Assembly (NCBI GenBank): GCA_013115145.1
Contig: JAAPAO010000025.1
Span: forward strand, 61,687 to 125,686
Reading direction: 5' to 3'
DNA: 64,000 nt
From: Perkinsus chesapeaki ATCC PRA-425
Taxonomy: Eukaryota; Protista; Perkinsozoa
Under the pieces are notes generated by a model. That model was given only the letters and a program-made list of their open reading frames with translations. It searched no databases and was not told where the DNA came from. Of the stretch, positions 21,000 to 61,500 are shown piece by piece. The position numbers and the translations under genes were made by a program. Position 1 is the stretch's first letter. The number at the start of each line of letters is the position of its first letter.

Positions 21000-23900
21000 G
21001 TAGGCGCATAATTGCTGGCTCGATAGAAGGTCTGGCGGGGTACCTGTTAATGACGGGTACTGTAGAAAGTAAAAGACCCTCTTCTGGTGTTGGAGAAATT
21101 GGATTTAGAGTCTGAGATTGTCGGTGGAGTGATGGGGAGATTACTTTCGTAAATGCTAACTTTTACGAGTCTGTAAAATTGTTAAAGCTGGGAAATCGTC
21201 TGCGTTATTGGTTAGCAAATTCGTCACACTGACGATGGACAACGAAAATTTTGAAACTATCTAAAATGCATATTTTGCGTCTTACTGGTATGAACTGCTC
21301 CTGTAGAGCTTTGATGGGATATTGATGTCATGGAGTAAAAACAAGCTATTGATAATGCAAATGCTAATCTATGTAAAGATCTTCTACTGTAGTACAGTCA
21401 GTGTACTAACTTTACCGCACTTCATATACGTTTCACTGCCCTTATATGAGCAGTTATTCAGTGCGATATAGACTCCATAACATTCAGCTTGGTTAAACCG
21501 GTTCTAGAACCTCGCTGGTCCAGCAAGGTTAAAAATAATTTTTAATTTAGCGCGCGCCCATCTAATCGATTTAATCATTGGTAGTGAGTCGTTGTTGCTG
21601 GTGGTGGTTGTTACTGGATAATGGCACTAGACGTTAATGAAGCATTGGAGTTGGGGGATTTGGGGAATATATCAATTGATATGGGAGCTGTTAAAAAGGT
21701 AATAGAAACTCAAAGGTTAGGGCGGTTGCCGAGGACTTGCCCTACGTAGGTTAATAATTATTAAATTGTAATATATCATTCATACACCGCAACACATTCA
21801 AGCAACTCGTGTTGTTTAATTACTACTCGTTATTTGCTAGGAGCTTGGCTCTTGGGAGTAGACTTGTTTTACATAGGGACACCTGAGGCACATCGTAGTT
21901 GTTGTCAAATCCTATCAATCGTTCTATACTTGTATAGTGTTAAATCCGCTCCTATAGTTGTTGTCCATCCTAAGGTTGCTAAAAACGTGTTTGACGGTGT
22001 ATGATAATCTGAACTGATATACTGTATAATATCATTGCTAAGCTTCGACCGATAGTAATGCTTGGTTTTACTAGCGCTGGTATCTGATCTGTATTGATAT
22101 TTTATTATGATCAGATATTACAGCAAATAGTTGACCGGCAGAATGCGACAGTCGAAGCTACTGCTGGCTTTGGAGATGATATTGGTAATAGTCCACGGGG
22201 AATAGTGGTCGAATTATTATACGTTGTATTATCGTGATGGCACTCCAAAGCATGCAGGCTTGCTGATCTGTCAATCAAGAACAAACCTTTTTATAGTGGA
22301 ATACTTCTAATGGAGTTAACTGTGCTGTAGTGGTAAAATTATACGATCGTTCACATTATAGTTGTTGTGGAGGACACTATGGTTTAGAAGGGGGTATGTC
22401 AATTGTCAAGTATCGAGTGCACTGGGCAGCACTCTCCAATACCCCGTCAACAGTTGGACTATCAGTAAACGACACATGGTGCGAATTCTGCCAAAACGAC
22501 TTGCAAAAAATCCATTACGATCTACTATGTATTAATGACTATGTACAGTGTTATGTGGCAAGTGACGGCTTAGATGGGCTCAAGGCTCATCTGGAACGGC
22601 GCGAGTCCAAAGGTATTATTCAGCGGCGCCGTACTGAATGCACTACAGTATTACGGTGCTTGCCACGAGTTGCTGGCTTTGGCAACAGCACTACAGGTTC
22701 GCGGCTTTGAGATATCGGTGGTACTATTGAGGGGTGCTGTACATATTGCTGTAAATGGATTGCTTGCTATTGGAGAGTAAAAATGATACCTTTCGTATAT
22801 AGGCGCTTTGGCGTTAGAACGTATCTTAGCTTTATGCGTGCACGTTGGTATCTTTAGTGAAGTTGAAGGCACAGTTCGAAGAGCGTGGTGAAGTATCGGA
22901 GAAGTTGAGCTCGCAGCTGACGGATGTTATGGAGAAGGTTGAATCTATGGGTAGAAATGGAGGATGGGGGAATTGAACCAAGGACCTTTTTCAAGAAAGA
23001 CACGGGCCATGTCTATTGGGCTATTATGGTGCTTTATTTTAGGGGAAAGGCTGCGTGAATTGGAGGGGAGGGACTTAGAGGGTCTCCGGGAAAAGATGGA
23101 AAGGTAGCTTTTTAATTCAGTGGCGAAATTTCGGGGAAAATTTCCAAAAATATATTTGCTCTATCTCATAGGTATTCTCGTTTGTTGCACACTTGAACGT
23201 TTTTCAAGCTTAATAATTTCCTCACGAAATTTGGTCGCTTTTCCGAGGAGGATCAAATTCGGGCAAGGCCACCGATGAGCGTCCACTTGTGTGCTCTTCG
23301 GTGTATCTGGTAATGTTTTGGTAGAACGAGGGCAACACTTTAAGTTGACGCAATATTACATTGGTGAAAGCAGATAGAGCTCCGAGATGAACGGAGATAC
23401 GGATGATTGGTTGATCGATTTGTTACGAAGTCTCGGTGTGAAACGGTTGATCGATTTAGTATGTTGATAAAATATAACACTTTTTAGTCACGAAGAGTCA
23501 ATAAGAGAGCTTCGAGAGAAGACGGCGGGAGTTGACCCCGCGATAGCTAAATTGGAATTGGAGCAATCTGAGCTTATGAGCAAGTTTACAGGATTGGAGA
23601 ATAAAGTCAGCGAAAATGGCGACACGGTTAGAGCGATGAAGGTAGAGCGGAAGGTTGCGGGTTCGAATCCCGGCGATGGGCAATTTTGTCGTCTTTTGAA
23701 ACCTTGAAGATAATATTATTGTGATTTAATTGCTATGTTCATTGATAAAAGGGGAAAATTTTATGCCGAAAATTTCCGAGAATTTTTCCCCTCGAACGCG
23801 TGTTTAGTCTAACACTACTGGGTTGCCGGCGTCTCCAGATGTATGTGAAGAATTGGGCGTTCAATTCAGGTCAGTTGGGAGAGTACAATCCAGCCGACAG

Positions 23901-26640
23901 TCGAGGAGCTCAGAGAGAAGGTTAAATTGTTAACCTCTCGAGTATCTTGCACGGAGGAAGATATCGAGCATCTTCGGAAAGATATCACGCAGAAGGTGAA
24001 GAGGTCGCGGGTTCGATTCCTGGTTAATCTGATAGTGAATTGAATTTGTTTTTTGAGAATTATGCAATCTCGCAGTAATTTTGAAATTGCCGTCGGTACC
24101 AATATATTTTCTTGGAAGTATCTTTCCCTCTTTAGTACGGCGACTCTCTGTGGGTGGAAATACGTAATGCGGTGGAGAGAGTAAGCAAAAAGGAGTTTAA
24201 AGAGGTGGAACAAAGAATTGAATTAAATAGCGCAAAATGGTGAGACCGGGGATCGAACCAGGGACCTTTCGATTGCTCACTGCAGGCACGAGCGATCGAA
24301 ACAACTGTTAACGTACACAAGAGATCACATTTTAACTGCTGGTAGGGGGAATCGAACCGGGGACCTTTCGGTTAGTAAATTCAATTTAGTGGCGTGCGAG
24401 TTCCATGAGCGAAGATTGCAGCATCACGTGTTTTCGTTGTGGTTTCAAAGTCAGTGGGAAGCGATGAAGAGACGGGCGGCTATACGAAGGCTGGGCTCGG
24501 TGAGCGTCACGCGCCACGAAATTCGGGAGGGTATTTTGCTGGTTAGATATTCCATAATCATCAGAGAGCGGCGTTGTGGGGATGGCGGCAAAAGGCGGAG
24601 TTTGAGGGGTTGAGGGAGGGGGTGGAGATTCAGGTGAGGAAAAGTGGCGTAGTGGTGGAGGGGGCGATTGATAATCGCTCCGCGCAGGTTCGATTCTCTG
24701 GAGGGACGTATTGCTTTGTGCGTCAGTGTGTGTGGAAATCTTGTCGCTCACTGCGGACTTGTTGAATTGGAAAGAATATAACGCATAGATGGACGGGAAA
24801 AATTGAGAGGGAAAATTTATTTTCGGTAATTTTGTGAAAGGATTTTCCCGGTCAGGAAAATTTTTGCGGGAAATTTTCAGTATTTTTCAGATTAAAGGAG
24901 TGAAGGAGGAGATTGAGCGATCTGTTGGTGATGATATAAATAAGGTAAAGGAAGTAACGGATGAATTAATGGAAAAGAAAATTGATGCGGTCGAGTTCGA
25001 GCGGCGGACGGGAGGTACTATGAGGGGCTTGAAGATACGTAGGAGATATCTCCTATTATCCTATGATTCCACAGATGCTACCCGTGAGATAGTTGGAATG
25101 AAAGCAGATCGGTACAAAGAAAGATATTTTTGGTGCCACGATTGTGAGCGACGGGTACTTCAAACTTGATTCAGCTTTGAGATTTCCGGGGGAAAATGAA
25201 TATATCGATCAGGTGATCGATTACATGATATCTTTTAGATTCTGTTCGACCTCTGGAAACTCGATTGAATGAAATTGAAGAGTTGGTTCGGAAACTTGAA
25301 TCGGTTGAGGATCAGCCACCGTCGATGAGTTCGGTGGGAGGAAGGGAATCTAATAGGAGTGTTAATAGCAGTCCAAGGGAGGGAAGGTTGATAGAGGTAA
25401 TGTGTTGAGGAATTGCAAGATTTATCAAGATTGCAAGAATTGCATCGCGCTGATTTGGCGATGGTTTATACTGCATTCGCCATTGGCTATATATTTTCAG
25501 TTCCGTGAGAGTCTGGAGGGGGTAATAGAATCAGTGAGGGTTATAAGAGATGAAGTATTACCGAGGGAATATGCAACCAAGGAGATGGCATTACAGTGTA
25601 CTAGAGGTAATAATAAAGGAGGGCATTATTTTACTTTTCAACTCTATCGTTTATTTTTTCTGTGAGGTGAAAGAGTTGGTCAAAAATTTTTGGGAAAAGT
25701 TGGAAAAATTATGGTTCAGAATATTCAGTGTTGCGGTGAGAAGTTGGCTGAAAAGCGGACAAGAGGATAAAAATTAGGAAGTGTAAAGTAATTTCGGAAT
25801 CCTCAAAATAATCCAATTCATTACCGACTAACTCGCCAGCTTCCTGTGATTCTTTTCTTCATTTTTCATCGTATTTTTTGCTGATCGTTCAGTTTCAGAT
25901 GCATTGGAGTTGCATAAATTATGTCAACGACTGGATTCTACGAAGGCTGATCGATCAGAGATGGACGCAGCAGTACTAGAGACGCGCAATAGCTCACAAC
26001 GATTGGGTGAGTTCGGTGGGGGGTTGGGAGCGAAATCTCCAAGATGGCATTTTACTGGTGGCCCAAGCCTTCTTGGTATTATTTCTTGGTGGTATCTAGT
26101 CACTATCTATTTTGGGCTTGTGATATGCCCGATGGCACAACGAGTATCTCCCGGTCATCTTTCCGACATGCGCACTGTTATTTCCGAGGGACCTCGATCA
26201 AATATCCGGCGCGTGGCAGTTATTTCCGCCCGGCACGCATTTATCCGATTCGTTCATGTGCAATATCCGACGAGTAAAGTCATTCTAATATCCGCCCAAT
26301 TCGTGGTGCACGAATGTAACAGTGCGCATGTCGGAAAGATGAGCGGGAAATGCTGTACTACCCACACACTGGTCCAAGCTGGATGATAAGGTCGGCATGT
26401 AGTGTATGGTGGTGAATTGTGAATAGTTGGTTTATTATTCACAGAGGTTTTTGTATCCTTGGAATGTTATTAGATGCTTCAATTGGTGGTAAAGTCGAGC
26501 TGTTGGCGGCGCAGTTGAGAGAGGCAGAAGAAAAGGGGAGAAAAATGGAGCAATGGTAGTGGGGCAGGTTTAACAGGGGGAGGGCGTGGGTTCGATTCCT
26601 ATCGGAGAGAAGTAAATTGTATTTTTTCTTCCGCGAAGTT
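21000..26640 (+). CDS. Large multi-exon coiled-coil protein gene (possibly two genes), boundaries approximate
   Basis: Frame-consistent splicing gives KVESM|GERLRELEGRDLEGLREKMER and ELNSAKW|HERSKQLLTYTRDHILTA|VACEFHERRLQHHVF. Further exons SHEESIRELREKTAG and LDSTKADRSEMD. Confidence 0.6.
22951..23042 (-). other. Plus-strand intron containing an antisense degenerate tRNA
   Basis: Reverse complement has A-box-like TAGCCCAATAGACATGGC and B-box TGGTTCAATTCCC. Flanking exons join in frame. Confidence 0.7.
24240..24285 (-). other. 46-nt plus-strand intron starting with an antisense tRNA T-arm
   Basis: Reverse complement reads GAAAGGTCCCTGGTTCGATCCCCGGTCTCAC. In-frame splice. Confidence 0.75.
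24342..24389 (-). other. 48-nt plus-strand intron starting with an antisense tRNA T-arm
   Basis: Reverse complement reads GAAAGGTCCCCGGTTCGATTCCCCCTAC. In-frame splice. Confidence 0.75.
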
Positions 26641-26849
26641 GACGGGGTTTCCAGAGGGAATGTCACACCCTTTTCCCGTGTACTCTGGAACTCAATGAAT
26701 GAAGACAAATTTGAATTTCCGATGGATGACATTCACCCGATTCCTTCCTCCTGGGTGTCGATACCCGAAATGCGGAGAATAACTCACTAATTAGTAGTTC
26801 ATTCGGCTACGAATCATCGAACAACCATTCCAATCAACGTAGATGGGCG

Positions 26850-28450
26850 GCGGCAGTCCAGCTCGCCCGCCCGACCGCATTGCACTCTAAAGAATCTACG
26901 TCACAAAACCCGGTAGTCATCTCGACTTGGTCAACTACAGTAACCCTTATTATCATCCCGTTGAAGAACTTAACAATTAATATCATAATTATAACAACAT
27001 ATCGATAACTCCCTTGACAATATCCCATATCAGCAGTCATCACCGCTTTCTGAGTTATTCATTTTACGCGTCGTTTTTCAATATTTTCCTCTACCATATC
27101 TTCATTTTCGTCCGGTGTGAATGTTGTGGCTTTTCTGATGGAATGTTTTCCCTTGTTCAGTCTGTCTACAACCGAGTCGGCAGTGGCGGGCCAAAATAGC
27201 GCACTACAAAGAATGAAAGATACGCTTGTAAAGCTATCAGACTTCACTCAGGAACTCATCGATCGTTTTGTCAATCTTGGCAGTGAGGCAGGAGGTCGGA
27301 AGAATCTTTGTGTGAATGCGTGCAAATATTTTTTCAAGGTTCAACTCCGAGAAGTGGTGCTAATCTGACGTATATGGTGCGGACAGGCGGAGGGTATGAA
27401 CCGAAGGAATATACAACATTGAAGGTAATTGTAAATCGATTATCTGGGCGCGCGCTTTTTACAAGGCCGGTCAGGTTGGTGGTGAAGAAGGCGGGGTTGT
27501 GAGGATACCGGGGGTATTTGATGGTGGAGAGGAGAAGGACTCAGCGATTGATAGGTGAGATGGGTTGGTGGGGATGGAAGTGACGTTTGCCCAGTTGAAG
27601 TTGGTCGTTTGTCCAGAATCAGGGATTTGCTGGTGTTAAGCTATATATGTACATCAGGAATACACTAGATGGGAAGTTAGTCGCAGGCTCTCATTTGTGG
27701 TGAATTAGCTTTGCACGCTGACTCCCGGTTGGTAGTGGACGCATACTGTATGGAGTTTTACCGATTCCTGTGGTTGCTGGAGCTTCTCTTTTGTCAACCG
27801 TCAAACCTGTGGATCTCTCGGGACATTCTAGATACCTTGATCCAGACTTCTTCATAGTGCGACAGGTATCTTCAGCATGCCAGAAGTGTCATTGAGCGAG
27901 CAGCATCAGCATCAACTTCGAGGATGAGGAGCAGCAGCAGTGGTGGTAGGTTTCGGGTTCTTGGGTACGCTCCCGACCGCGCTTAATTGCCCATCCGAAA
28001 TAATCAAGTAGATTGAAGATCATCATCAGGTCGAGCACGGTCACGTTCTAGAGTGTATCGAACTCCACCGTCAAGGGAGCTTGTTCAGCCTAGAGGGGCA
28101 GCGGTGGGGACGCCAGTAGGGAAGGTCGTGGGTTCGATCCTCGGGAGTGTATTTTTAATTTAGGTTGGCGGACGGTATATTAGAGGAGTTGGCTTTGTAC
28201 ATACAAATTGACACATTTGACAAAGGTGTTCCTCATGCTATCAGCGACTGGCTTGAGTTTTGTGGCGCGCGGTCGGGGAGGTGGGGGGATTTGTATCTCT
28301 TTCAAAGGGACTCTTTGTAGTGAGGAATTTGGCTGTAAGATTTTTCGTATTTATCAATCTCGGTGGCGCTCAAGTTAACCTGGAAGATATCTTTTAAGTT
28401 TTCGCCTGTTATGTCCTCATCGACGTGTGTCCAGGACGATGGTCCAGTGA
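26850..28450 (+). CDS. Hypothetical multi-exon protein, boundaries approximate
   Basis: Exons such as MKDTLVKLSDFTQELIDRFVNLG, VVDAYCMEFYRFLWLLELLF and IELHRQGSLFSLEGQR|LADGILEELALYIQ (in-frame across intron 28104-28163). Confidence 0.55.
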
Positions 28451-28749
28451 GAGCAAATGGGATGAGGAACTATGTTGGAGAATCTGATGGAAAAAGTGAA
28501 AAAACGGGGAATGGCTTTTTAAGCGTGCAAATGCGCAATGGCTTTGTGTCGGTAAGACACCGGAAACCAAAATCAATGGTAGTGTGTTGTTATTACCAAA
28601 TCTACTCATTCATACTCTTTCTCCTTTCTACCGAACGGGTCAGGTTTTTTCCAGGATTGTTTGTTGGAAGCTGTTATTGGTCTGTAAGGGCTTGCCAAAT
28701 AAATACAAGATACTTCACTGACTTGATCTTTAATCTGATTTTTAAATGA

Positions 28750-31637
28750 CCGCACGCCATGAAATATATTTAGAATTTACGGTGAAGATACCTCAGGAGA
28801 GCTCGAGCGAGGATATAGACCCGACCGGTAGGTGACGTGGAAAGGGGACAAATTGCACAAAACTTGACGGGCGTTTTCGAGTGTTAGTTGGCTTGTCCTA
28901 GAAGTTCTTCGCTGAGACACGGTAAAAAATGGACGAGGGGTTTTTCCGAGAGAAAGTGTAACACTAGTACAGGCTGCCAGGGGAGTGACGGGAGTGGCGG
29001 TGGAAGAGCGTGGCGAAACGCGCGTACTCTGGTTGGATTTCATCTTAGTGGAGCAACGGGATTGTGTCGTCGAGTTTTAGGAGGAGTTTTTAAGAGGTCC
29101 CTAATAGGCGCAACTCAACCGTGAGAGCAATGCTCCCAGAGAATCAACTCTTCGGCACGGTTATCACTGATAGCATGTCAGTCCGATAGATTCAGATATG
29201 TTATGGAGATTTAGGTTGATGATTTCAAAAGATCCAACTTGAATCTTTTAACTTGTTTATTTTTTAGGTTGGATGTTGTGGCCTGCTGCTCGGTGTTTTG
29301 CTGATTATTTGTCACTGCGCCCCGAAATTGTACGCGATAAGGATGTGCTTGAACTGGGCAGCGGTAAGTCAGTCAATTTAAACACTTTGAGTTGACCAGG
29401 AAACGGTATAGAGTCTAGTGCTGTGTAGTGAAAGTGAAGTATCCTTTCACTTCACGGCACCGGTGAAACTCCAGTGTATTCGGTGAACCATGATTCTACC
29501 ATCGATTGAGAAGTGGCGAATCCTGGCAGCAACAAGCGTCCCTACCTCAGTCGATTGTCCACCAGAGCCTGTCGGAGAACTCCTAGGGCTAGTCTAGCTA
29601 ACTCTAAGAGTTAGCCGATGTGTGTGAGATTCCCACTGAGAGTCGCACACAATATATGATGATTAGGCGTACATTTTCCTCTCATCTTCGAGTAATCAGC
29701 AACCGGCAGCGCAACAAGGCTATGGTGGAAGAGCTTTCTTATATCGATACTCAAGTCTGTTAGAAGAGAATTCGGATAGTTGGAATCTATAAGCGTTCAG
29801 TTTGTATTCAAGAACAGCGCTACTCCCTTCCTGCCGGATTCGGGTTTGACTGGTATGACTATCGTAATGCCTGTCGTATGTCGTAAGTCGTGTGACTATG
29901 GCTGTCGTAATAGTACAGTTGTCGCGTACAAGCGCGGTGCATCGTCGGGTAGTAATGGACACTGTCCAATGAAGAGCATGACTTCACATTCCATCGAGGA
30001 TGGCTTATCTGCGCGGTAACAGAAGCAAAGATGCAAAATATAGATGCCACCTACAAGCTTACTGTGAGAATCGTGACTTGTGATTCACAAGTAAGATTAG
30101 CAAGATCGCAAGAATCTCTTGTCTAACACAAGTATCTTAAAGCTACTGTAAGCTTAGTGCAACTACGATTGTCTAAAGTAAACTCATAAACTTTGCTGTA
30201 TATATTTTTATTCCACAAGTCCTAATGCTAATTCGTTATCAATTCGTTAACTATAAGTTCAACGAGAGCCAAGTACAGCAACACTTACCTTAAAAGGCTT
30301 CCCCGTTCTTATGCTAGCGGTCAGTGACAGCAGAAACCAACAACCTTTTCAGGTTGGTATCCGGGACATATTTGGTCTGATAGACCAATATGACTTGGGA
30401 GTTTTAGTCTGTTACTTCTGTAACTTGCAGAATTGTTCTGGAATCTAAGATGGTAAATGACGAGTCGTCATTTACCATCTTACCGTCATTGACGGCGATT
30501 CACTAGTGGTTCACTAGCCAGATGGTTCTTCCACTTGAGATGTGAGTACTGCCTGGAAAAGTTTTTCACACATCGACATACCTCTGCGCCTGCTTCAACG
30601 GAGAGACCATAGACCCAGCCGCGCTGTTACATATGGACTTGTTCACATCTACCAATCAAACTACGGTGCTACTCCATTCAACCCAACGAGCTTCTCTACT
30701 ATCACGGAACTGCAGATTATCTAACTCAAACAACGTCGCGTAACGATTGTCTGCGGGAGACTGACTCAACTGGGCTGCTAACGCCTGTTACAGTGCCATA
30801 TTGTCTAAAGATATCATATATGTGCACAAGTGTGAGTCTTTCTACGTGTCCCGGACATGGTGTCCCTCAGTGCGTTGTGTTACGACACCGTGTATTTATT
30901 TGTTTGAAATTAGCAGGGAATTTAAATCGATTACATAGACGCGCCTAGATATATCAGCAGGCACTGGATTTGGTGGGATTGTGAGCTACCTGCTGGGTGC
31001 GAAATCTGTGATATTAACAGATCTCCCGGAAGGACTTGATCGATTGGATGAGAGCTGCCGATGTAATGGTTTGCGTGAGGTTGAGGAAATACAAGTAAGT
31101 TCAAGATTGCAAGATAAGTGTCATAACTCTGTAAGGTACGATCGTGTCCGTGGGGTGACATGCAGGCGGTTGAGAAGTTACCAAGGCAAAGATTCGACGT
31201 GATTCTTTGCTGCGAGGTGAGATCCCGGGATATCTTTTCTTGCATGAAATGCACGCTCGACGTAAAGATAGCTGCGTCTCAGGTCCTCTATAAACAAGGT
31301 GAAGAAGTTTATGAGGATCTGATGAAGACTATAAAGGCAACAGCAAAGCCTGGTGGAATTGTATTGGTGGTAAGAAGCGAATTTAATGGTGCGCGGGAAA
31401 TGTATCTGCCTTTGCTAATGATTTTAATTGGATCGAGAACTTGTAAGAAACGCGAAAAACGTTCCTGAGCTCTGATGTCGGTGTCTGGCAAGAAGTCCTG
31501 GCTAGGTTTACGAGTACCGTGGATCGATGCTGGAAGATCAGTACATGTTTGATCTTCTATTTGATGAGTATCCCGATGGTAGAATGGAAGTGTTGGAAGA
31601 AGGTGAAGATGACGACTGTGAAAGAAGATTATTGTGA
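28750..31637 (+). CDS. Methyltransf_16 (METTL21/EEF2KMT-like) SAM-dependent protein methyltransferase, 5' end uncertain
   Basis: Spliced DIDPTG|WMLWPAARCFADYLSLRPEIVRDKDVLELGS|GTGFGGIVSYLLGAKSVILTDL...FDVILCCEV...LMKTIKATAKPGGIVLV. Stop at 31635-31637. Confidence 0.85.
29364..30960. mobile_element. 1.6-kb intron expanded by inserted TE-like DNA
   Basis: About 20 times longer than neighbouring introns. Several hairpins. A minus-strand fragment GRKGVALFLNTN resembles the APE endonuclease of non-LTR elements. Confidence 0.5.
30446..30495. repeat. Perfect 18-bp palindrome plus a small hairpin
   Basis: TAAGATGGTAAATGACGA-G-TCGTCATTTACCATCTTA, then CCGTCA-T-TGACGG. Confidence 0.9.
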
Positions 31638-32220
31638 GGATGGGGCGCGCGAGAATTGTTGGTGCCTAAATTGGATCATAATTTTATTAGCTTGCCCAAA
31701 ATGTCTTCGGGAAAAAAGATTTGGACTCAACATGTAAAGATTTCAGGGTTGACTCTGAGTTTCGGGTCCTGGAGAATCCTCGTCGATAATTTTTATAACT
31801 TTTCCGAAAATTTTATCTTTTTTTGTCAGATACGTTTTTCCTGTTCCTCTCGACAGCTCAGCAGCAGCAACAACCACCAATTCGTAATGTGTTCAATTTA
31901 CCACATCATTGTGATGAATTCCTACGTCATCAAGGTTCTACTACGTTTCTCCTTCAGGGAAGATGAAAGTTTAGTTGGATCTTGCGATCTTGCTTCATCT
32001 CGCATTTCCTCAAATCATTGCTGACGAGAATATTGCTTGAACTTGTCCCAAGTCCGATTGACCTTCATAAGTGGATCTTGCAATCTTGCTCCATCTTGCA
32101 TTTACTTAACGCCGTTCAGTTCCTGTTGTTTTCTCCTAGTATATGTCAGTAGCAGCATCCGTAGCTAGTAAGAGCTTGCCTATTGAGAGTGCTGCAAGGT
32201 TGAGTGTGCTGCAGTCAAGG

Positions 32221-34774
32221 ATTAGAGGGATGATGTTGGGTGGAATCATTGGGGACTGTTTTGGGACAAGGTGACCTATTTTGTATCTTAGCTTCGATAG
32301 ATCCCCGGAAATTTTTTTTCACGGTTGGAATATCTTCCGGCTTCCCTGAGTTGAATTCTGTGATTTCCTTGTCGGATTGTCGTGGAATAGAAATTTTTCT
32401 GGCGATGCAGAAATCGCCGAAATTTTTTTCAATTTTTTTCCTCGGGGAAAAGTAAGACATGCCGCGCACGTGTATTCGAGCAGCGTGGTTCAAAGGAAAA
32501 TTTTACGACATTTTTCGGGAAGAGTGGTATGATTTCAACGTGGATTTTCGGGAAAAAACTTCTCTTCTTTTGGAGTCCTGTATTTTGAATCAGGTTCAAC
32601 GATGTTGGCGTTGGAGCGCTACCGATGATGGATGTTGCAGAATCTATGTCGTATCGTACTTTAGCGCCTGCCCTATCCAAGCTTTCGAATGGGAAATGGC
32701 TGTTCAGACTATCGTCCGATGGGTATATGGTAGGGATATCGACCCCTTGGGTATCTTGCACACTTCAAGCTTAGATGCTGGAAGCGACGAAGAATGTTCT
32801 TGATGGTGGTGACAGTAACAGTTTGAGGGAGAAGCTGGTTGGTTTGATGACCGACCCGAGCATGAACCATCTCAAATGGGGGTCTGGCATCACTTCAGTG
32901 AGCAATATCATAATCGATCAGATGATCGATTTGTGTCTCAGGTGCTCTCCGGCAATGCTCCCAAAGCCAGCGAGCTCCGCGGGAATACCGTGATGGTCAG
33001 AAGTCTGCCGGCTGCACTTTTCCCCGATGAGGAGTATGAAAATATTTTCTATCAGGTGAGAAAATTTTTTCCCTTGGAAAAATTTCCCACAAAAATTTCG
33101 CTTTTGATTACCTGCTTACCCTCCGAAATGGTCAGGGATTATGACTCGCGAAATAAGTCTAGCTTACCAGAAGTGAAATGGAAACTGATATGCACGATGA
33201 TGGTTTTCTGATGCCGAAAAGATAACGCATTTCCCGCTTAGTTGGCGGATGCTGTTCCTACTCATGAAGTGGCGAGAAAGAAGGCTAAGAGCTTGGCAGA
33301 TGCTTGCAAGGCTGCACTTAAGAGTGGAATATTCGATCCTACTATGATTAAGGATAAAGCGTAGGTGTTATGAATCTGACCTATTCGGTATCCTCCATGT
33401 TGTAACCAATCTCGCATCTTTCCATTCTAACCTATCTCGCATCTTTCCATTCTAACCTATCTCGCATCTTCCCATTCTAACCTATTTTGTACCTTCCCAT
33501 TCTAACCTATCTTCTATCTTCCCATTCTAACCTATTTTGTATCTTTTAGTACCGTCTCCGCCCTTCAACTTGCCACTCCAGCAAACTACGATGAAATTTC
33601 TATGAATCTTCAAAAGAGGCTGGCTGCTCGAGTAGGCATATTTCGTGGCGCGTGAGAAACGTATTACAATATCTTAGGTTGGTCAAAATGCCATGGCTAG
33701 CACTACTCTTCCTGTTGTCGCTTTTGCGATGAAGCAAGGTGAAGTCGGCGAGGAAGTTCACGGGAAAGACGAGTGAGTTTTTGTACATTGGAAAAGTATC
33801 GATGAGGACATTTCTGGAATTTGGACCTAGGTGTGAAAAATTTAGAAAAAACAACTTCGTCTGATCAACTGGGAGAAATCTGATGAATGTTAATTTCTGA
33901 TGTGGAGAAGCTTTATGAGGTCTCATATAACTTCTCGTACAAAGGCACAGTAGTTGACAAATAATTAATAATTTCTATGGCCCAATCCCGTTGTAGTTGA
34001 GAGAAACAATATTGAAGTTGCTTTGTTCCATCAATTGTACCTTTCTAACTTTTATGGTATTCCTTTTGTGATAGCTTGCCCTTATAGGGCTTATGCTGCT
34101 TTATTATTTCAATAATAGTTTCACGGACTTCTGCCGAGGATGGCTTGATGAGATTTACTGATTAGGACAACCGAGATGGGTGGCATATCTTTGGACCCTT
34201 CCATGTTCTCACCGAACATTCTCAACAGAAGTAACAGACTCGATCTTGCACAGGAGTTTTACGAAGAGACAGCAAATGCCAGCCCTACGTTTGGTCAAAA
34301 CGGTAAGCTGTTCGGCTTTCATTCTAAAAGTCGTTGGTTCGATCCCTGCATCGCTTATTTTTAGAAATGCATTTGATACTGAGTTGGGCTATCAGTTGTG
34401 GTGGCGACACTCGTACAAGTGGCTGCCTCGCTGGTGCCTTGGCCGGAGCGACGTAAGTTGGGAGAACTGAAATCGAGGTTCCTGGTTGTGGATCCGACTT
34501 TCCCGTCAACTTTCGCGGGAGGCCATTCAGCATAGGCTTAGTCTTCCGAACTTAATTCAATGGGTCCACTTCTACTATGCTTGCAAGGTACGGTGTGGAA
34601 CAGATTCCCAACGAGTGGATAGCGACTTGTGAGGGTTCCAAAGAAGCCATCGCAGTTGCCGACAGAGTCTTCGATGAGATATATCTAAATAATCCAATTT
34701 TGCTCGAATCGATCGTGCAATCGATTTCCGTGCCAGTTCGAGAGGTTCATGTTCCCGCGGATGGAACAGCATAA
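32221..34774 (+). CDS. ADP-ribosylglycohydrolase (ARH/DraG family), 5' end uncertain
   Basis: IRGMMLGGIIGDCFG, RGNTVMVRSLPAALF, WAISCGGDTRTSGCLAGALAGA, YGVEQIPNEW. Confidence 0.85.
33409..33547 (+). repeat. Intronic minisatellite, 25-bp unit, about 5.5 copies
   Basis: ATCTCGCATCTTTCCATTCTAACCT repeated with divergence. Confidence 0.9.
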
Positions 34775-35128
34775 AAAATGCAGTTTTTCCCGTCATTCGC
34801 CAGCGATTCTTTCGCTCAGCGCGCCGCGTAACCGGCGGCATGTTGAAAATCTTCACAGTGCGGCGCAAAGATACGGTATCTTAGATACCCTTCTCTACCA
34901 CCACTCACTTGTGTATAATGAGCATCATAGTCGCATTGTTCCTCTATTCCGTATGAATTCGGTCCGACCTATTTTGTATCTTATAATTTCGTGGCGCAGC
35001 GGTTTCTGCAGTTTGTGTGTTACTGTCACAAAAACAAGGTATATTTTCTACAGAATGATTCGTGTTGCGTTTGTCAATTCACAAAAAAGGCGGAGCGAAG
35101 TTTTCTTGACATTTTCGGATAATCGAAA

Positions 35129-38100
35129 ATGAACGAGTATGAATACATCTACACGAAGCTCAGGAAGGAATTCGGAAAGTGGGCGGAGCGAAGCGCTTCA
35201 TGTTTTACAGTTTTCGCAATGCTTTATCAGGTATTGCGCTTTTAGCGACACAGATCCAAAGATGCTGGCGTCAGTTGAGGGGAACCCGGATGCCATGAGC
35301 CAATATAGGTGAGAGTCTTGCCGTCTTACCGTGACTTGTAATTCCTCAACGGTATCCTAAGGTTGAGCATGCAGGATATATGGGTCGGATTGTTGCAGAT
35401 ACAAAAATCCATGCACATTAACATTCGACAACATTCCAGTTATGTCGGAGCATTCTGTTAATACTGACACAGTGAAGACAGGGAATAAAGGGCAGGTGAG
35501 CAGCGGGGAAGCCGACGAAAATTCCGGGAAAAATCTCCTCATCGTACAGGTTTTACGGTACAGTATGCGACAGCTGAAAACTCGGTGTGTGGACGGGCAA
35601 AAATTCCGACGAAAAAGGAGTTATAAAAAGCTGGATTTAGGGGCAGAGAAATATGAGTAATTCAATGGATAAGGAATTGGCTCGAAACCCTCCATGCTTA
35701 TCGAGATTTTTGCCAATCCACCCCGCGTTCGTAGATGTCGCGTACTGCGCCTCCTCCAGGGTAATCGAACAGTCGCCGGTTCGATTCCCAGAAGCGGTAT
35801 GTTGTGATGTTTAGTATCATTATTATTTAGGTTCACATTGAAGGAGGTTGGCCAAAAGAAGTGGACTATAGCGAAGCGCAGGACACTGCAAAGTGAGGAG
35901 GGTGTCTTCATTGGCTTTTCGAGCTTCCTGAAATGTGTTGATTATTATGGCATTCGATGAGGCCAGTTCGGACCTCACTTGGGTAAAGCTGATGGTATAT
36001 TGTCAGTCTTGGCTCGGTGAGCTATAGAAGGACAAAAAGTATTGTTAAACCCCAAGAAATGATTTTATTCTTTTTCTTCTCTTCAGAAGAACCTACGTCG
36101 AAATTTCTCCGCGCGCATACGTACTGTATTGCCTGACTGGTGAACAGCGATGTTACCCCAGTTGTGAGCAAATCAAGCCGGAAAGGCCGGCGCGCCTTGC
36201 TCTGGAATGGCATCGAATCCTCTCGAATGGAGGTTCACATTTTCCGCAAGTTCGTATCCTCGCTGCGTCAGTAATTCACCAAAAGTGAGATCTTGGAAAA
36301 TTGTGACCAACAGACGGCACGACCGAATGGTTAATTCCGTATGCGCAATAGAAGGATTTCCCAATCAAGGATTTTCCGGCCCGTTTGAAATTTCCGAATC
36401 TTTTCTAATTGATATATTCTTTTTCAGATGGAGAAAGCGTCTCGATAAAGATCCTCAGTTTGGCGCGGCGATGAAGTCTCTGTGTGGAGAGGTCGAGCAC
36501 TTCATCGCTCAGAACAGTAAGATCTCATTTCCGGAATCTTCACCAAAAATGGGTGCGCGTGCGAGTTGCACGTCCATCGTGGCGAACGAGATCTGGAAAT
36601 CGGCGTTGCTGTTCATTTTGGGGTTTTCTTCGAAGAAAAGAGAAGATTTTTGGAAAAAGAAAATTTAGGAAAAATTTTCAGGCACAATCGACATGTTCGA
36701 GGATTACTTCTCGGGCGAAGAAGTTCAACACCAAATGCAAACAATGTCGACCAGTACAGTTGCAGTGTTCCGCGATCAAAGTAACAAGAATAATATCAAA
36801 TCGATCACCTGATCGATTATGTCTCAGACGAAGAAGGCTATGGCAGAACTGTGTCGAGGATATCTTGGCATCCTGAGGGGGGCCATAAATTCATTGCCAG
36901 TTACTCGGTATTAACACGTTGTTTTAGATAGTTACGGATAGGTGGAGTTGTCAGGTTATGCAGTTCCAAAGGTTGGATGATCCTATTGGGCAATCAAGCT
37001 TCATTTGGGACGTAAGTTGGTCCAATTCAACCTCAAAAATATCTTCTTATTTTTCAAGGTTGAGAATCCTAACGTTCCTGTGGGAGAGCTCCTCCCTCCT
37101 TCCCCACTGATATGTACGCAAGTAAGTTCATTTCGAGGCGCGTGACGAATTGGCTAGCATTTCCGAATTGGAAGACCTCCACGGCTTTGAGACGTGAATT
37201 CTAAATGCATTTTGTTTACAAAAAACGGAGAAAAGATTCTCTGAAATTTTCCGGAAAATTTCAGTTTTTTTTTCAGTACCAAACAAGGAACCCCGATACC
37301 CTAGCTGGCGGGGCATATAACGGATTAGTCTTCTTCTTCGACGTTCGACAAGTAAGAGGGAATTCCAGGAAAAATGATAGAGAGATTTTTGAGCAAAAGA
37401 ATGGCCGACATCTTCATGCAGACATGGTTATCCTTCAGAGAGGTATTTTCTCTTTGACTGCTTGAGTGTGACAGATGAGAGTGAATCCGAAATCGTGGCA
37501 GAAATTTGCACCCCGATTCTTCCGAGAAAATTCATTCGTTAGCTACTTCTGTGACAACCAGAGATGAGAAGCTTGGTGGAGTGCTAGAAACGGTTTCGAT
37601 CATTCGCACTTGGGCGGGATATTTCACGACGAGCAAGATCGTCGTGTTCAGGCGACGAAGCCGGTGGGGAAATCTTCATTTGAGCATTCCCATCATGACC
37701 CGGTCTACGACTTCGTTTGGCTGCAGTCCAAGACTCACAGTAAGAATAGCGTAGTGGTTAGAGACTCGAGCTCCCTTGGAGAAGGTATCGAGTTCGATCC
37801 CTCCGTTTTGTACAGGTGAATGCGCGACAACTTCAACTGATGGAAGAGTGCTCTGGTGGGATGTTCGTAATTTGTCCGAGCCAACTGATGAAGTTATTCT
37901 TACGGACGGCAATCGAGAAAATCCAAAGCAGCTTGGTGAGCCGGGACGAACATGTTAGGGGGAAAATTAAAGTGAAGAAAATGAACTTGGAACTGATTTG
38001 CGCTTGGATCTTATCCGATTGAGGCAGTTGGTCAGTCCAGTTTTTTTGGCGGGGGTCTCTTCTCATGAGGAGGATAAAATAAATTTCTGAGGAAATTTTG

Positions 38101-39342: not shown

Positions 39343-39789
39343 TCCATGATGAAAATTGAAAGTGTTAATAAAGATGTGTTTAGTTTAAGTACAAGTTGAT
39401 GTTATCTGATCGAAAGGATTGCGGAACTGTCGTCCTAGTTTTTCGGCTAGTAAAGTCCGAGTCGAACTGTCCGACGGAGATACCGAACTCTATAGAAGTC
39501 TGACGTGCACCTTGGTAACCCCGACGGCACTTGAGACTTAAAAGTTGCTTATTTAACCTACTAACAGCCTTTCTGTTTCTTTTCATTATTATACATACCG
39601 AACAGCCCCTTTAAGGAAGTGTAAACATATACGTACATTAAAGGTGTATATGATGGTGCATTCACTCAACGAAACGCAACAAGTATTACATTACTAGCTA
39701 AACGGTAGAAGCAAATCATGCTACATTACAGTTTACTAATAAAAATACATTTGCAACGGTACTCAATTATAATGCTTTTAGCGCCTGAT

Positions 39790-43100: not shown

Positions 43101-43358
43101 TGGTCGTTACAAACTACTGAGATGTGTTCAATAAAGAACATTAGCTCCTGTAATCACGATTTTCCAATTTCTTACTCACTGAAGAGCTCTCGTTATTACC
43201 GAGTTGTCTTTTCCAAGACCGCCAATTTTTATTCCCTCGGCAATTTTAGGGCGCGCGAGATATTTTTAGGCGACGCCGAGGGTGCATCAGCGCGAAGTGT
43301 CCTTTCCGGGATGAACTGTCAGGCTGAAAACCAGCAGTGAACTGCAACATCGATCTTT

Positions 43359-47279: not shown

Positions 47280-48997
47280 GACCAACTCTTTTTGTCAGTT
47301 TTTATGTTGCTTTCTTTGTGGATTGCGCAAGTTCGTCTAGTACGAATTACCGCTCTTGTGTACGGAACGAGTCAATGCTAGATAGTCGGTTCGCTCTGTT
47401 CAATCATTCTAATCTTGCCTCCTTATTTTTGCTCTTTCGCCTCTGTATCATTGAGTGCCTCAGTGAAGCACTTACCGTGATAGGTTCATATATTCTGGTG
47501 ATTGAGATTCGATCAAGTCACTAGTCTAAACTACAGTTTTATCTAAAATGAATTGTGGTAACGGTATAGGTGATGCTGAGTTGGATTATGATGAACCAAC
47601 TGTATGTTTCACCAGATCAACTTCATTGTGAGCGTGATGGTATAACTCCCTACCCTCAGACCTCTACTGAGAACAATACTATCGAGATGATATGCCAAAG
47701 CTGTACCGAAGTTACTTCGGAGCAAATTGGCATATGGCTCAGATCTGTCGGATACTTTAAATGTTCAATCTGTTAAGCTCGTGATAGCTATTGGAAATAT
47801 CTAGTGGTGTGACAGCCTATTTAGTTACGATCTTTTATTTTGAAACTGAGCTTTCATTGATGTTGAGTGTCAACATACATGGTTTGGCATACACGTAATG
47901 CCAAGACCAGTGTAGTACAATACACGGATCATATCCGATTCAAGGATCGTAGAGGGGCGAGCAACGGACACGAGCGACAAGCATCTCGACCGAGGAGTGG
48001 AGCAAGAGACAATATGATGGATGTACAGAGAGATGCAAAAAATCGACCAACCCCTGAGATCTGTTGACTGAGAATTCTTAAGCAATGGAGGCACCATTTC
48101 TAAGCTGAATGAACTTTTCCATTATTGCTGTATTAATCAATTTGATGGCTGAATTGGGCTTCGAGTTACGGCTGGGCGAAGGAATGATTACATAGAGGAA
48201 TAAACTACCTGATTCAGATTGCCCGTGGAATAAGGAGCCGCCTGAGCGATATGTAACATTATTTCATCGTTGGCTTGATAGCGCAATTGTTGTCCTGCAC
48301 ACGGCATACAGTTGCGCAAACATCGATATGGCTATGAACTGGACTGCTCGCAGTATATGCATATTGCATGCATCCCTACACACGTTGGTCATCAGAGAGT
48401 GTTATGCAAACTTCAAGTAGAGCCCTTCTACAACTCATGTCTGCAAGGTCGCATAGGAGCACCAGGCTGTCTCGACTACGCTGTTTGAGGATCGTTCTCA
48501 TAACAGTTGAACTATACCGTTCTACAGCTTGTTGAGATTAAACTCTAACCCGCCGACTTAACTCCTAGCATTTCATATCTCGATTGAGGGTTGGCCCAAT
48601 CTGGTCGATTCCTTTATCCTCATAAGGCCTTCCTCTATCGCAGCTGTCAACTTGAACCGTACGGACCGCTCGGAGTGGTCCGCTACAGGCGGCTCTGGCT
48701 AGCAGCCCATCGAAAGCCACAAAACCCACATCACTCCCGCGGGAAGGGAAGCCATGCTCAACCACTCACTACAAGTTTCATGTAACTTGAAGCTATAGTT
48801 GAGAAGCGCTTGGAGGCAGAGTAGGCGCAACCTGTGGCCCAGGTTACCTGGCACCACGATCGCGCTATTGGAAGCCGGTGTGCGCTCCAACTAGGCCAAG
48901 TTAGCTCGACCAGCTGGGCTGCTCACCGATCCCACCGTAGTTTTCCCTTATTCACATGTAACTGTTACATTATAGCATTGATGCTTTAAGTACAAAT

Positions 48998-50360
48998 ATG
49001 AGACAATGGCCGATTGTTCTGGCATGTAATGCTGGGACAGTAGATCAACCCTTCGCTACGAATCCCGCAGCGGGATTCCCGCTTGAAGCTCAGAATACTT
49101 GCCCAGTTGTCGCAGACATTAGCGTGATAGCTACCGGCCCGGCATTTTTCACCGAGGTGGGAACAATGAATGATTTCACCTCCGCGGATGCTGTGGACGT
49201 AGGTGCCACCTTGAGTCGGCTCTTCCGACATCGAGGTCCTCCAGCACTTGTTGGTTTACGAGGTTGTCATCTCTCTTCCGTAGCATATCAAGGTTCTCTT
49301 TTGCGTGACAGCGAAGGCAGCCCCAATGCCTACGACAAGTCCTTTCACGTATCTAGGCTTGATTATTTTCTTACTTACACTTGATCAGGAAGTGGTGTTT
49401 GGAAACGACTTGGAATTGTCATGACCTTCTATCTCTCCATTCCCTCGCAGCTATCAGTCATCTTGTCTAGTATAGCGGCTATCATAATGTATCTCATCGC
49501 GGGGAAACGCACGTTTCTCACCCTTACCGTTATTCTGATGTGTTACATTATAATCCCTTGCGGCCTGGTTGCAGCTGTACTCATTGCCAACAAGGATGAA
49601 AGAGTATTCCTCGATAAGTGTTGTATCTTGCAGACCGATCGTAATGCCAAGCTACAAGGTATATCCCGCTTATCCGACTACCTACGTGCATCGAACAAGC
49701 TGGTCGTATTTTGGTCACCAGATTATCTGAAACGGCTTTGGTGTGTGTATGAACTGGCAAAGTTCTTGGAAACCCACGAAATGAAAGATGTCATTATCAT
49801 CAATCTAGAGCATGTTAAGTGCTGCGTATGGATGATGCTTGGTGAGGGTGTCGGTATAATAATTTTAGAAGTTTTGACAATTTACCGACTTGAAAATAAG
49901 ATGGACACCCTCTTTTTCATCGGTGGGCGTTCTGCTTACTATATGGATACCACTCTAACTTTTCGTCATATGGCAAGAACATTCAAGACATGCCGCCGAT
50001 GAGCATTTGTTGTTATTGGAGAAGCTGTTTTCTCACTCTTCCGTGCCTTGGACGGTTCAACGGTGCCTGCCTACGTTATAGGTGTACCCGCGTCGGTAGT
50101 GAGCACACCCCTCAATATTGTATACTCTGTGCATGCAGAACTAGTACCCCGAGTCCTGCTATGCTGTCAGCCCCTCATGTCGTTGCTTGTGGGTTATAAA
50201 CTCGGTATTTGAGGATACCATAAGAATATACCACAGACCTTGGTGAAGCTTTTCTTATTCGTATTTTGCTTCGTGTTGTATATTTGGTTAAAAAGGTATC
50301 GAGTGCCAGAGCCATTTTCATACCTATCGCACTATCGGCTGAACTGTCCAATAACCCCAT
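48998..50360 (+). pseudogene. TIR-TM pseudogene copy
   Basis: Long near-identical DNA blocks with 45795-47279. TGG to TGA at the SHSW Trp (49381-49383), in-frame deletion near 49910 and a frameshifting deletion near 49990. Confidence 0.85.
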
Positions 50361-58560: not shown

Positions 58561-61500
58561 TCATAAAACAACATCCCGGACTCGCTTGCGATCCACAAAA
58601 GACAGATTGACGGCTCTATGCTCGTCTGGATAGAAACGATACAAAAATCGTTTCAGAAACTTTTGAGAGATGACTACTAACCCACCACATCAGCCACCAC
58701 CGGCAATTGAGCCAGCTGACCCTTTGCAGCTATTTGCAAAACGACTTCGACAGTGCAAGGCTCCCTGGCTATTATTTCAACACCGACGTACATGGCCAAG
58801 CCGGGAGGCAGAGGCCCTGGACGGTAACTGAGACTGACGTGAGGCCAAGCGGTTGAAAAACGTGAAGCCTACATGGGAAGCACAACTGCCTCCTTCGTGG
58901 GAACGTTACCGATCACCCGCAATTTAAGCCTGGTCAAACAGATGAGTGAGCGGAGCGAAGCGCAACACCTTGTAACGTCGGCATCGAGGTTTCGGACTTT
59001 AACGACCATTCGATAAATACCATGCTGGCGAACACTGCCAAAGGCTAAACGTACGGGGCTGACCTGAACGATGATTGATAAGCGGCGGGGAGGAGCGGTT
59101 AATCATAAGCTACAGCAGTGGAAGTGGAATCTAGTAGATCTGTACCAAACTAATCGTAATGTACGCATGCGCATTAACGCAACTCGGTTTCACCCTCCCA
59201 ATGAAGTGTACTACAGTCGCATGACTGAGCACCAAGTGGTTCGTTATACTGCAACCCGCGGTAGCACAGTAAAATATTCCGACTAGTTGCCTGAAGAGGA
59301 CTGACCTCAATGAGCTTATTAGGATCCCCGAGGCCCAACAACGAGCCAGTCAGATATTCAACCGGTGGGACTTCATCGCCTTCGACGTTGCCAGAGAAAG
59401 CTGAAGATACCGCTTATAAAATTACATTTTGAGCAATGCACTAACCCAGTGCATGCACATAAGGATCCATGGGGCCTCTATGACCGCCAGCACGTCGAAC
59501 CTGTAAAACCGTTACTGGGAATCGAACCAACGACTTCACTAATAAAAGGTTCGTTCACTAACCAACTGATCCGCGGACCTCCATTGCCCCAGGAGCTTCG
59601 ACCGCTTCCAACTTCCTTGCCAAACTAGACGTTCTAATTCGTCGATCAACCGGCGCTTCGGTGAGGACAAATTCCTCGTTACGCAGGATAAACGGCTCTA
59701 AGGAGGAAACGCTCTATGAGTACAGGGAAAAATCAAAGGTAATATAATGTAAGCTGAAGAGTTGCCATAAATGGCCTAAGTATCTTGTAACAAGTACAAA
59801 AACAAGATTCTTGTTTTTGCATTGTAGCCGTATGCTGCAAGGTAGTATTCGCTGGCGAGCACGCGGTAAGTCTGGAAAGCCGGCCTGAGTCACCTTCTTC
59901 ATGACGGCGTGTTTCTCTCGGTTCGCCATAGACGTCCCACTGAGCACCGCGCTTGTCCGGATGTGGTCCGTCGGGTGTGATGCTAGCCAGGACCTGCCGA
60001 GATTCGAATCCTAACTGAACGATTCGAGAACAGTGGTCTCGTGGCCTAATGGATAAGGCGTTGGTCTTCGAAACCAAAGATTGTGGGTTCGAGTCCCACC
60101 GAGATCGTTTCTTCTCGGCGAATTTGGTTTTGGGTTCGTTCGTCACCGCGTTCGTCCGGTACAACCTAAGTTAAGGCAATGCGATACGAACAGAACGATA
60201 GCGGATGTAAAGAGACCAAAGGTTCGTCTCATATGAAAGTGTAATTGTCTGGAGTATCCGTTTAATTACAGAGGCTCAGGTCGGCGATCAGCGGCCTCTC
60301 TCGACTAGACCAGCGTCATCTCACTTTATTCACCCCATCGCTGATTGAGTCTTCTGGTAATTCATCACTCGTGTCTTTATAAGCCAACTATGTAGGAAGC
60401 TTCAACCATTGACTTGTTAGCATTGATACCTCCTTCTCTTGAATTAGTTTTTCCATCTTGTCCCATTCATCCGGCAACAGTGGATCCCAAGGACTCCGTC
60501 TTGCAAAGGCCGCCCTTTCCTCCCTACTGCCAACGACTTCTAGTTTCTACATGAGGACTGGCCGGTCGAACTGTGAATTTGAGACTTACTGGTAGAGGCT
60601 TCGGAGGAAGCTGGTCAGGATCAACCTAATCAAAGATGGCATGTCACGTGGGGTTCGGTCGTCGAAGGGGCAGCTACTTTCTGTCCAAGCATGCGATTTT
60701 CCACGAGGAAATTAAGACCATGTTCACTCTGGAAGTAGTTATATGGATCCACCACTGTGGGAGGCTCGTCATCCTGACAGAAATGAACGAGTGAAGAGCT
60801 TTCGACAAAGAGTGACAGCTGTGGGGTTCGAACCCACGCCCTTTCGGACTGGCGCCTTAAGCCAGCGCCTTAGACCACTCGGCCAAACTGTCAGTGATGA
60901 AGAGTTTCACTCTGCATACTGAACAAAGCTTAAAGGCCTTCTGTACAACCCTCGTAAACCACTTCGTTAGTTGCCACTTCCTCTTGAGCTTTCCTGACAT
61001 TTCTTCGTCCTTTATTCAGAGGAGCCTTCTCGGATTTAGCGTCAGCGCCTCCCTGAAACACCCGCAGGTACTTACGAGCCAGAAGTTAACAAAACTTGCA
61101 CTCGATAATACGCTCGAGGCACGTCACAAGGTGTGACGTGACGTGTAACGGAGTGACTGAAACCGTCCAGGCCTCAGCTCGATCGACCACCATGAGAAAA
61201 GTCTTCGCACCAAACAGAACTGTCCTCTTGCCGAAACACATTTTGGCTGGTTTTACTCGGACCACCGGCATCACACGGGAAGGCGCGAAACTCTGCAACA
61301 ATTCCTTGGAAGCAAATGCAGTTCCATTTCGTGATGCAACACGCGTTGAGCATCCCAATTCTCGATTGGGAGCTATCAACATGTTCTCACTTTCGATTTT
61401 GCTACTTCTTCCAGTTGCTTTTCTGCAGATTTCCTTCGCCTTTCTTCTGCCACCTTTTCTGCCATTCTCCCAGCTCTCCTGAGCAACAGATTCTGAGTGA

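Follow-up and report, generated by a model that had tools for sequence, protein, structure and literature searches.

Dead tRNA gene copies in spliceosomal introns of Perkinsus chesapeaki

A stretch of 64,000 nucleotides (nt) from the genome of the oyster parasite Perkinsus chesapeaki ATCC PRA-425 (GenBank assembly GCA_013115145.1, contig JAAPAO010000025.1, positions 61,687 to 125,686 of the forward strand; hereafter the window) carries 13 dead copies of tRNA genes, that is, RNA polymerase III (pol III) units with terminators, in the spliceosomal introns of its genes. These relics share the window with four live tRNA genes, a density of 17 copies per 64 kb, and every copy, live or dead, is situated in an intron of an intron-rich gene. 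The scenario that we favor, at a rough probability of 45%, is that dispersed tRNA genes colonize introns, die and get trimmed, while the block around the B-box persists, probably as a putative binding site for transcription factor IIIC (TFIIIC).

A Discrete Class of Intronic Motifs

The B-box/T-arm motif GGTTCGAWYCC has 11 matches in the window versus 0.07 expected, with none of 100 shuffled sequences reaching this count, and the extended pattern AGGTCNNNGGTTCGAWYCC, with up to three mismatches allowed, has 16 matches versus 1.19 expected; the comparison with shuffled sequence that had been proposed in a preliminary description of this DNA thus comes out in favor of a B-box enrichment within the window. 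All 13 sites named in that description are recovered in a one-mismatch scan, each with zero or one mismatch to the B-box 11-mer: nine are perfect (23660, 24010, 24249, 24348, 26589, 34336, 35778, 41770, and 59518) and four have a single mismatch (22969, 24687, 28131, and 37791), and 11 of the 13 depart from a 16-position pattern at no more than two positions. The motif had been said to occur in either orientation, and indeed nine relics are in sense and four in antisense orientation relative to the host gene.

When a profile of the 29-nt core was built and both strands of the window were scanned with nhmmer, the 13 relics and the four live tRNA genes made up 17 hits of at least 11.6 bits, with the next hit, of 6.7 bits, falling to the noise level of shuffled sequence, and a scan with a position weight matrix (PWM) agrees, revealing no surplus above shuffles outside the class. 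Because of this gap between the 17 top scores and noise, the relics and the live genes form a discrete class, and chance or base composition are excluded as the source of the motif by the expected counts, the shuffles, and the nhmmer gap. The class is restricted to 22.9–41.8 kb and 58–61 kb of the window, and the claim that comparable motifs are missing from regions that are intronless or rich in transposable elements (TEs) is confirmed by the motif, extended-pattern, nhmmer, and PWM scans for the TE-rich 1–22 kb and the intronless 42–57 kb (37 kb in all). A control set of 42 kb from three loci of other eukaryotes contains one B-box match, inside a real tRNA-Lys. Standard tRNA searches are of little help with the relics: ARAGORN at lowered thresholds returned 35 hits, versus 23–36 in shuffled sequences, which is pure noise, and the Rfam tRNA model reached no relic even at an E-value of 10, finding at permissive thresholds only T-arm hits of 11–15 nt, and is therefore useless for delimiting the relics.

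Descent from tRNA Genes

As to the descent of these sites from tRNA genes, proposed before, we now have several examples to support it. One is the strict A-box TRGYNNARTGGT, found in two of the 13 relics (at 24645 and 37747), 42–44 nt before the B-box, a spacing as in the live tRNAs. By the same strict A-box criterion all the other relics are 3′ halves only, and the notion that the B-box is often accompanied by an A-box was an overstatement, the looser cases being limited to D-loop likenesses at 26546, 34290, and 59565. Another example is the 3′ end: in most relics the 7-nt acceptor strand and discriminator base give way to a T-run resembling a pol III terminator rather than to CCA, and the copies must therefore stem from a gene or from a primary transcript instead of a mature tRNA. 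A third example is the relic cores themselves, which comprise the B-box with flanking variable-loop sequence and can be matched to live tRNAs of the window, to Leu-AAG at 15 of 15 positions (at 26581) and to Pro at 18 of 19 (at 24001; 94.7% identity to tRNA-Pro positions 42–60). Several tRNA species are represented among the relics. The best repeat family in the window, D1, consists of three antisense copies in one gene, 65–78% identical over 40 nt, with the likeness confined to the tRNA core.

None of the relics would function as a tRNA: by the Rfam model and a check of T-stem pairing, none folds as one or forms a cloverleaf, and the T-stems are largely unpaired. Nor do they qualify as tRNA-derived short interspersed elements (SINEs), as they end in a T-run behind the acceptor strand, with neither a shared body nor a tail. 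An apparent “acceptor stem” in the ghost at 37740, paired at six of seven positions, was discounted, because the purine-rich donor and the T-rich tract pair by nature.

Live tRNA Genes in Introns

Four live tRNA genes (Table 1) were found by both ARAGORN and Rfam, all within annotated gene spans and all in predicted introns of 133–156 nt, with 18–44 nt of ordinary intron sequence on either side, and so all four intact tRNAs are indeed intronic. Together with the relics, which occupy introns of 46–335 nt, they make up the continuum that had been suggested, from live genes to ghosts. Ordinary introns here are 40–49 nt long, and a tRNA gene of 72–81 nt with a short trailer and a small intron would add up to the observed length, which therefore fits landing of the gene in an existing small intron. 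The T-run terminator of tRNA-Trp coincides with the polypyrimidine tract of its intron. A B-box-like sequence, GATTCGAATCC, is present at 60001–60011, 23 nt upstream of the live tRNA-Arg and in the same predicted intron, and may be an older relic. Amplification of tRNA genes is known for the genus: Perkinsus marinus possesses 349 gene copies of tRNA-Leu(AAG), 116 of Gly(TCC), and 46 of Ile(AAT), and Dada transposons target these amplified genes (Kojima and Jurka, 2013; PMC3706591).

Relic Introns and Their Junctions

Seven of the relic introns are short (46, 48, 60, 62, 76, 78, and 92 nt) and five measure 141–335 nt (Table 1), and thus the characterization of these introns as mostly 43–92 nt long holds for only seven of the 13 (46–92 nt). 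Two of the positions listed before, 24688 and 35779, are those of B-boxes and not of intron starts, the introns in question being 24634–24890 and 35496–35830. The coiled-coil gene has a relic in six of its first approximately eight introns, and DNAI2 in two of 16.

Table 1. Relic-bearing introns and live tRNA genes of the window, with nhmmer scores of relics in bits.
Feature	Position	Strand	tRNA-derived content and remarks	nhmmer
Intron of coiled-coil gene, 92 nt	22951–23042	+	Antisense tRNA 3′-half relic, core 22966–22989, B-box with one mismatch; family D1 copy	16.3
Predicted intron, 228 nt	23642–23869	+	Sense relic, core 23649–23674, starting 8 nt past donor	19.5
Predicted intron, 141 nt	23996–24136	+	Sense relic, core 24000–24023, abutting donor GTGAAG	20.1
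Intron, 46 nt	24240–24285	+	Nearly all antisense tRNA 3′ half, core 24246–24270; D1 reference copy	19.9
Intron, 48 nt	24342–24389	+	Nearly all antisense tRNA 3′ half, core 24345–24369; family D1, 78% identical to reference copy	19.6
Predicted intron, 257 nt	24634–24890	+	Starts with whole tRNA ghost: A-box 24645–24656, B-box 24687–24697 (one mismatch), spacing −42	
Intron, 5′ part	26556–26640	+	Donor 26556 or 26559, 3′ end unfixed; Leu(AAG)-like relic, core 26580–26601, T-stem paired 5/5	
Predicted intron, 60 nt	28104–28163	+	tRNA 3′ half with T-run and AG, core 28121–28144	18.7
Intron of ARH-like gene, 62 nt	34303–34364	+	D-loop-like GGTAAG donor, B-box 34336–34346, acceptor immediately behind TTATTTTTAG	
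DNAI2 intron, 335 nt	35496–35830	+	Interior relic, core 35767–35792; both junctions fixed by homology	
DNAI2 intron, 76 nt	37740–37815	+	Whole tRNA ghost from first base: A-box 37747–37758, B-box 37791–37801 (one mismatch)	
Predicted intron of JmjC/Cupin_8 gene, 178 nt	41763–41940	−	Antisense T-arm and acceptor relic at 3′ end, core 41766–41783, T-stem 5/5; placed by gene span, sequence and frames, and candidate-intron prediction, other boundaries being possible	
Intron of PapD-like gene, 78 nt	59501–59578	−	Whole tRNA ghost, sense to host, core 59514–59536	
Live tRNA-Pro(CGG)	40423–40494	+	Antisense to JmjC gene; predicted intron 40365–40520	
Live tRNA-Trp(CCA)	58201–58274	−	Sense to PapD-like gene; predicted 133-nt intron 58182–58314, summed splice-site score 19.2	
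Live tRNA-Arg(TCG)	60034–60108	+	Antisense to host gene; predicted intron 59994–60146	
Live tRNA-Leu(AAG)	60812–60892	−	Sense to host gene; predicted intron 60774–60910	

Confirmation of the junctions through RNA had been called for, and it is available for the relic intron in the ARH-like gene: 34303–34364 (62 nt, GT..AG), like 34453–34587, is missing from a run X2 RNA contig, the other relic junctions being outside RNA-contig coverage (for the coiled-coil gene and DNAI2, outside that of both runs X1 and X2). The exon after this intron matches positions 254–277 of the Pfam profile ADP_ribosyl_GH, the C-terminal end of the profile, and the exon before it has no match to the same profile. Across 37740–37815 and 35496–35830 DNAI2 homologs align residue to residue, with no residue missing. 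The junctions of the remaining relic introns are based on reading-frame continuity and splice-site scores. One example is 22951–23042, with a continuous frame and prediction in both gene-model runs; another is 28104–28163, with adjoining predicted exons at 28030–28103 and 28164–28271. For 23996–24136 continuity of the frame was judged by eye, and the 3′ end is less certain, as the gene-model runs disagree. In the case of 59501–59578, which is without RNA support, the frame continues across the intron and in-frame stops are found inside, and the donor, GTCCGC, is weak. The ab initio gene models recover 11–12 of 13 trusted introns and merge or split small exons, and they were used only to place the relics outside predicted exons.

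Of the host genes, DNAI2 (35129 to beyond 39043, + strand) is split by at least 16 introns, of which six measure 40–49 nt, and after removal of 16 introns it translates into 502 residues without a stop, 52–64% identical to alveolate DNAI2 proteins, in agreement with a Perkinsus source. The JmjC/Cupin_8 gene is annotated at 39778–42025 (−) and the PapD-like gene from 53059 to beyond 62671 (−). The public + strand model that ends at 38310 is a fusion: its product of 1521 residues, over 29000–38310, combines a Methyltransf_16 gene with the ARH-like gene and a portion of DNAI2. By the RNA contig, the stop of the ARH-like gene is at 34772–34774, with untranslated sequence to 35011, and the ATG of DNAI2 follows at 35129. 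Over 34000–39900, DNA from another sample of this organism (run X4) departs from the window at only five single bases in 5.9 kb, all outside the relics.

A number of other observations can be made for the introns and their surroundings. The 335-nt DNAI2 intron contains, at about 35655–35690 and some 85 nt upstream of its B-box relic, a tRNA-Arg(TCG)-like 5′ half that comprises the D-arm and the anticodon arm and in which AATGGATAAGG is identical to the live Arg gene. Longer introns carry GGAAAATTTTCC-type repeats with phased A/T runs (23752–23775, 24795–24876, 25683–25701, 36640–36680, and 37240–37270; families D2 and D5). An inverted repeat of 38 nt, with arms at 26143–26180 and 26317–26354 that are 92% complementary and separated by 136 nt, looks like a miniature inverted-repeat transposable element or a hairpin. 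The window also contains a cluster of intronless open reading frames with TIR domains (1804–3363 on the − strand, 45795–47276, and 48962–49999) and a pair of paralogs without a Pfam match (43341–44438 and 51550–52668), all of which are singletons in 90% protein clusters, and no relatives were found.

Origin and Persistence of the Relics

In the order of events that we favor, a tRNA gene copy would land in, or survive only in, an ordinary intron of 40–60 nt, resulting in the introns of approximately 135–155 nt that house live genes; the gene would then die, and deletions would shrink the intron toward the 40–50-nt minimum of this genome, sparing a block of approximately 19–27 nt that corresponds to tRNA positions ~44–62 (the variable loop, the 5′ strand of the T-stem, and the T-loop, equivalent to the B-box). 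Introns of the shortest kind (46–78 nt) would be reduced to the donor hexamer, the relic, and the T-run with AG, and in sense copies the former terminator would be used as the polypyrimidine tract.

The evidence for persistence of the block comes from its contrast with adjoining sequence. Over the 13 relics, pairing is present at 17 of the 39 outer T-stem pairs (three per relic, the two pairs fixed by the motif being excluded), versus 37.5% at random, and the nine fixed B-box positions have only four mismatches in 117, with the consensus fit of the relics equal to or better than that of the adjoining live tRNAs. In leave-one-out scoring ten relics are at or above 22 bits and one is at 14–22 bits, versus a ratio of approximately 1:1 in simulated neutral decay at steady state. 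Because the adjoining sequence has decayed far more than the block and half-decayed relics are scarce, we infer selection on its sequence, although the same persistence would point equally to a recent burst from already degenerate masters. The retained block would most plausibly be a putative TFIIIC binding site, similar to an extra-TFIIIC (ETC) site, as its B-box fits the consensus and no functional pol III gene goes with it. The earlier idea that intronic B-boxes may be kept as sites of this kind thus gains indirect support, the role of TFIIIC itself being putative.

Multiple points weigh against this interpretation. Splice sites abut or fall within the tRNA-like stretch in at least nine of the 13 introns, two of which are exact tRNA-length ghosts, and therefore trimming to the very limit must be invoked; the absence of copies from non-genic DNA is not explained by colonization and trimming; and support beyond frame logic is at hand for only three of the 13 junctions. 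The argument for selection assumes tRNA genes with perfect stems as the start, and the picture would be the same if the copies stemmed from a SINE-like master that had already degenerated, or from one recent burst. The three antisense copies in one gene share 10 nt past the B-box, which fits youth as well as constraint. Finally, no ortholog from other Perkinsus species emerged from two DNAI2 profile searches, from a further search with a single-exon gene, or from an exact look-up of clusters, and thus age and constraint are approached indirectly.

The preliminary description raised the opposite possibility, that tRNA copies generate introns: as a tRNA “introner,” a gene copy or its fragment would insert into an exon and be spliced at once through signals of its own, in sense copies GT at tRNA position 1 or in the D-loop (GGTAG, GGTAAG) and the T-run followed by AG, and in antisense copies GT from the antisense acceptor strand. 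Intron creation would directly account for all copies being intronic, and it fits the exact tRNA-length ghosts (37740–37815 and 59501–59578), the two introns that barely exceed their relics (24240–24285 and 24342–24389), the donors within D-loop-like GGTA at 26556 (GGTAG) and 34303, the acceptor right behind the T-run, 24–32 nt past the B-box, in four of nine sense relics, and the last five exon bases before 24240, AAATG, which align with relic-flank bases of the sister D1 copy at 22955. The live tRNA genes, however, are flanked on both sides by ordinary intron sequence, the relic of the 335-nt intron is interior, no target-site duplication around live tRNAs is significant (flank test, p = 0.11–0.46), the “exonic A-box” stretch is not complementary to the 3′ strand in the way of an acceptor stem, and donor hexamers next to relics may simply be the original donors. 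Non-genic insertions would be expected as well, and none are seen. A repeat search of the window detected neither terminal inverted repeats nor target-site duplications at relic introns, nor does any whole intron belong to a multi-copy family of high identity within the window. The comparison of DNAI2 intron positions that had been suggested cuts both ways. Neither a relative (locus L001) nor Hammondia has an intron at the 37740 position, and the environmental DNAI2 relatives that come closest (P0264 on locus L003) are intronless, so the relic introns are lineage-specific in this comparison; but the DNAI2 introns without relics are equally so, as none of seven mapped Hammondia introns coincides with any of the 16 Perkinsus introns (the nearest to 37740 is 20 nt away), and therefore intron position does not single out the relic introns. 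Overall, we consider creation of introns by tRNA copies unlikely, if the most serious challenge to colonization of existing introns. The broader proposition, that tRNA gene copies are a main source of new spliceosomal introns in Perkinsus, with the dominant 40–49-nt introns being older insertions trimmed past recognition, appears doubtful; if it were true, Perkinsus would provide the first case of an introner derived from a cellular gene and not from a transposon.

The relics could also be neutral young debris of a recent burst of tRNA genes, surviving only where harmless, that is, in introns, with neither function nor intron creation involved; the cores would then look conserved only through the youth of the copies or their descent from degenerate masters. 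The top-heavy distribution of scores would be explained in this way, as would the family likeness past the B-box (families D1, D3, and D4) and the tracking of stem decay by B-box mismatches (three in five relics with decayed stems versus one in seven with kept stems), and amplified tRNA families are known in the genus (PMC3706591). However, even the top-scoring cores have broken T-stems, acceptor strands are mutually unrelated, and the implied flank divergence of approximately 0.3 substitutions per site would leave, by simulation, only about 11% of the cores above 22 bits; the absence of copies from 37 kb of TE-rich and intronless DNA is also at odds with debris, which we regard as rather improbable. 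Hardly credible is a role at the RNA level, with the T-loop of the pre-mRNA acting in splicing, for example as the branch site in sense copies, or being a target of a tRNA-modifying or processing enzyme. The A of TTCGA does lie 18–26 nt before the acceptor in four short sense introns, a normal branch-point distance, but four relics are antisense, at the 5′ end or the acceptor end of introns, TTCGAT departs from the usual yUnAy pattern, and ordinary 40–49-nt introns manage without a T-loop sequence.

Comparison with Known Systems

Live tRNA genes nested, in both orientations, in introns of genes transcribed by RNA polymerase II (pol II) are familiar from nematodes and mammals, where the host introns are long and relics are no noted class. 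In contrast, the host introns of live genes here are 133–156 nt, and relics occupy most of introns of 46–92 nt. The ETC and B-box-only sites known from yeasts and mammals resemble the relics in that a B-box of consensus sequence is retained where neither a functional pol III gene nor the tRNA structure is left. A genome has few of them, mostly between genes or close to promoters, while the putative sites described here number 13 in 64 kb and are all intronic. With tRNA-derived SINEs the relics share tRNA origin, decay of the cloverleaf around retained A and B boxes, and dispersal within genes, but they have no tRNA-unrelated body, no tail that is A-rich or like that of a long interspersed element, and no target-site duplication, and most are 3′ halves ending in a pol III terminator.

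Introner elements of Micromonas, Aureococcus, and dinoflagellates, and of Amoebophrya (PMC7789003), offer a parallel, as there, too, one recurring sequence takes up all or nearly all of the short introns of genes that are otherwise unrelated, in either orientation, and the lineage is alveolate. Introners, however, form families of whole introns that are almost identical, often with inverted and direct repeats at their termini, whereas here only a tRNA core of 19–27 nt recurs, the cores come from several tRNA species, inverted repeats and target-site duplications were not found, and live tRNA genes share the niche. The tRNA families of P. marinus targeted by Dada belong to the same genus and comprise hundreds of near-identical copies, of which Leu-AAG is the largest family, and the window has both a live Leu-AAG gene and a Leu-like relic. 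That study (PMC3706591) counts genes and describes inserted transposons, and contains no report of intronic location, relics, or tRNA-sized introns. Full-text literature searches, including the introner papers on related parasites (PMC7789003), likewise revealed no account of tRNA relics in introns.

Implications

The origin of new introns and the abundance of tiny introns in some lineages are still open questions, and the pattern described here bears on both. Annotation is affected whichever explanation holds, as the public model fuses three genes and antisense tRNAs can be misread as coding sequence. If the relics create introns, they would represent a new introner mechanism. If they are instead kept as TFIIIC sites, pieces of pol III promoters would be a common intragenic chromatin element in an oyster parasite whose pol II promoters are poorly known.

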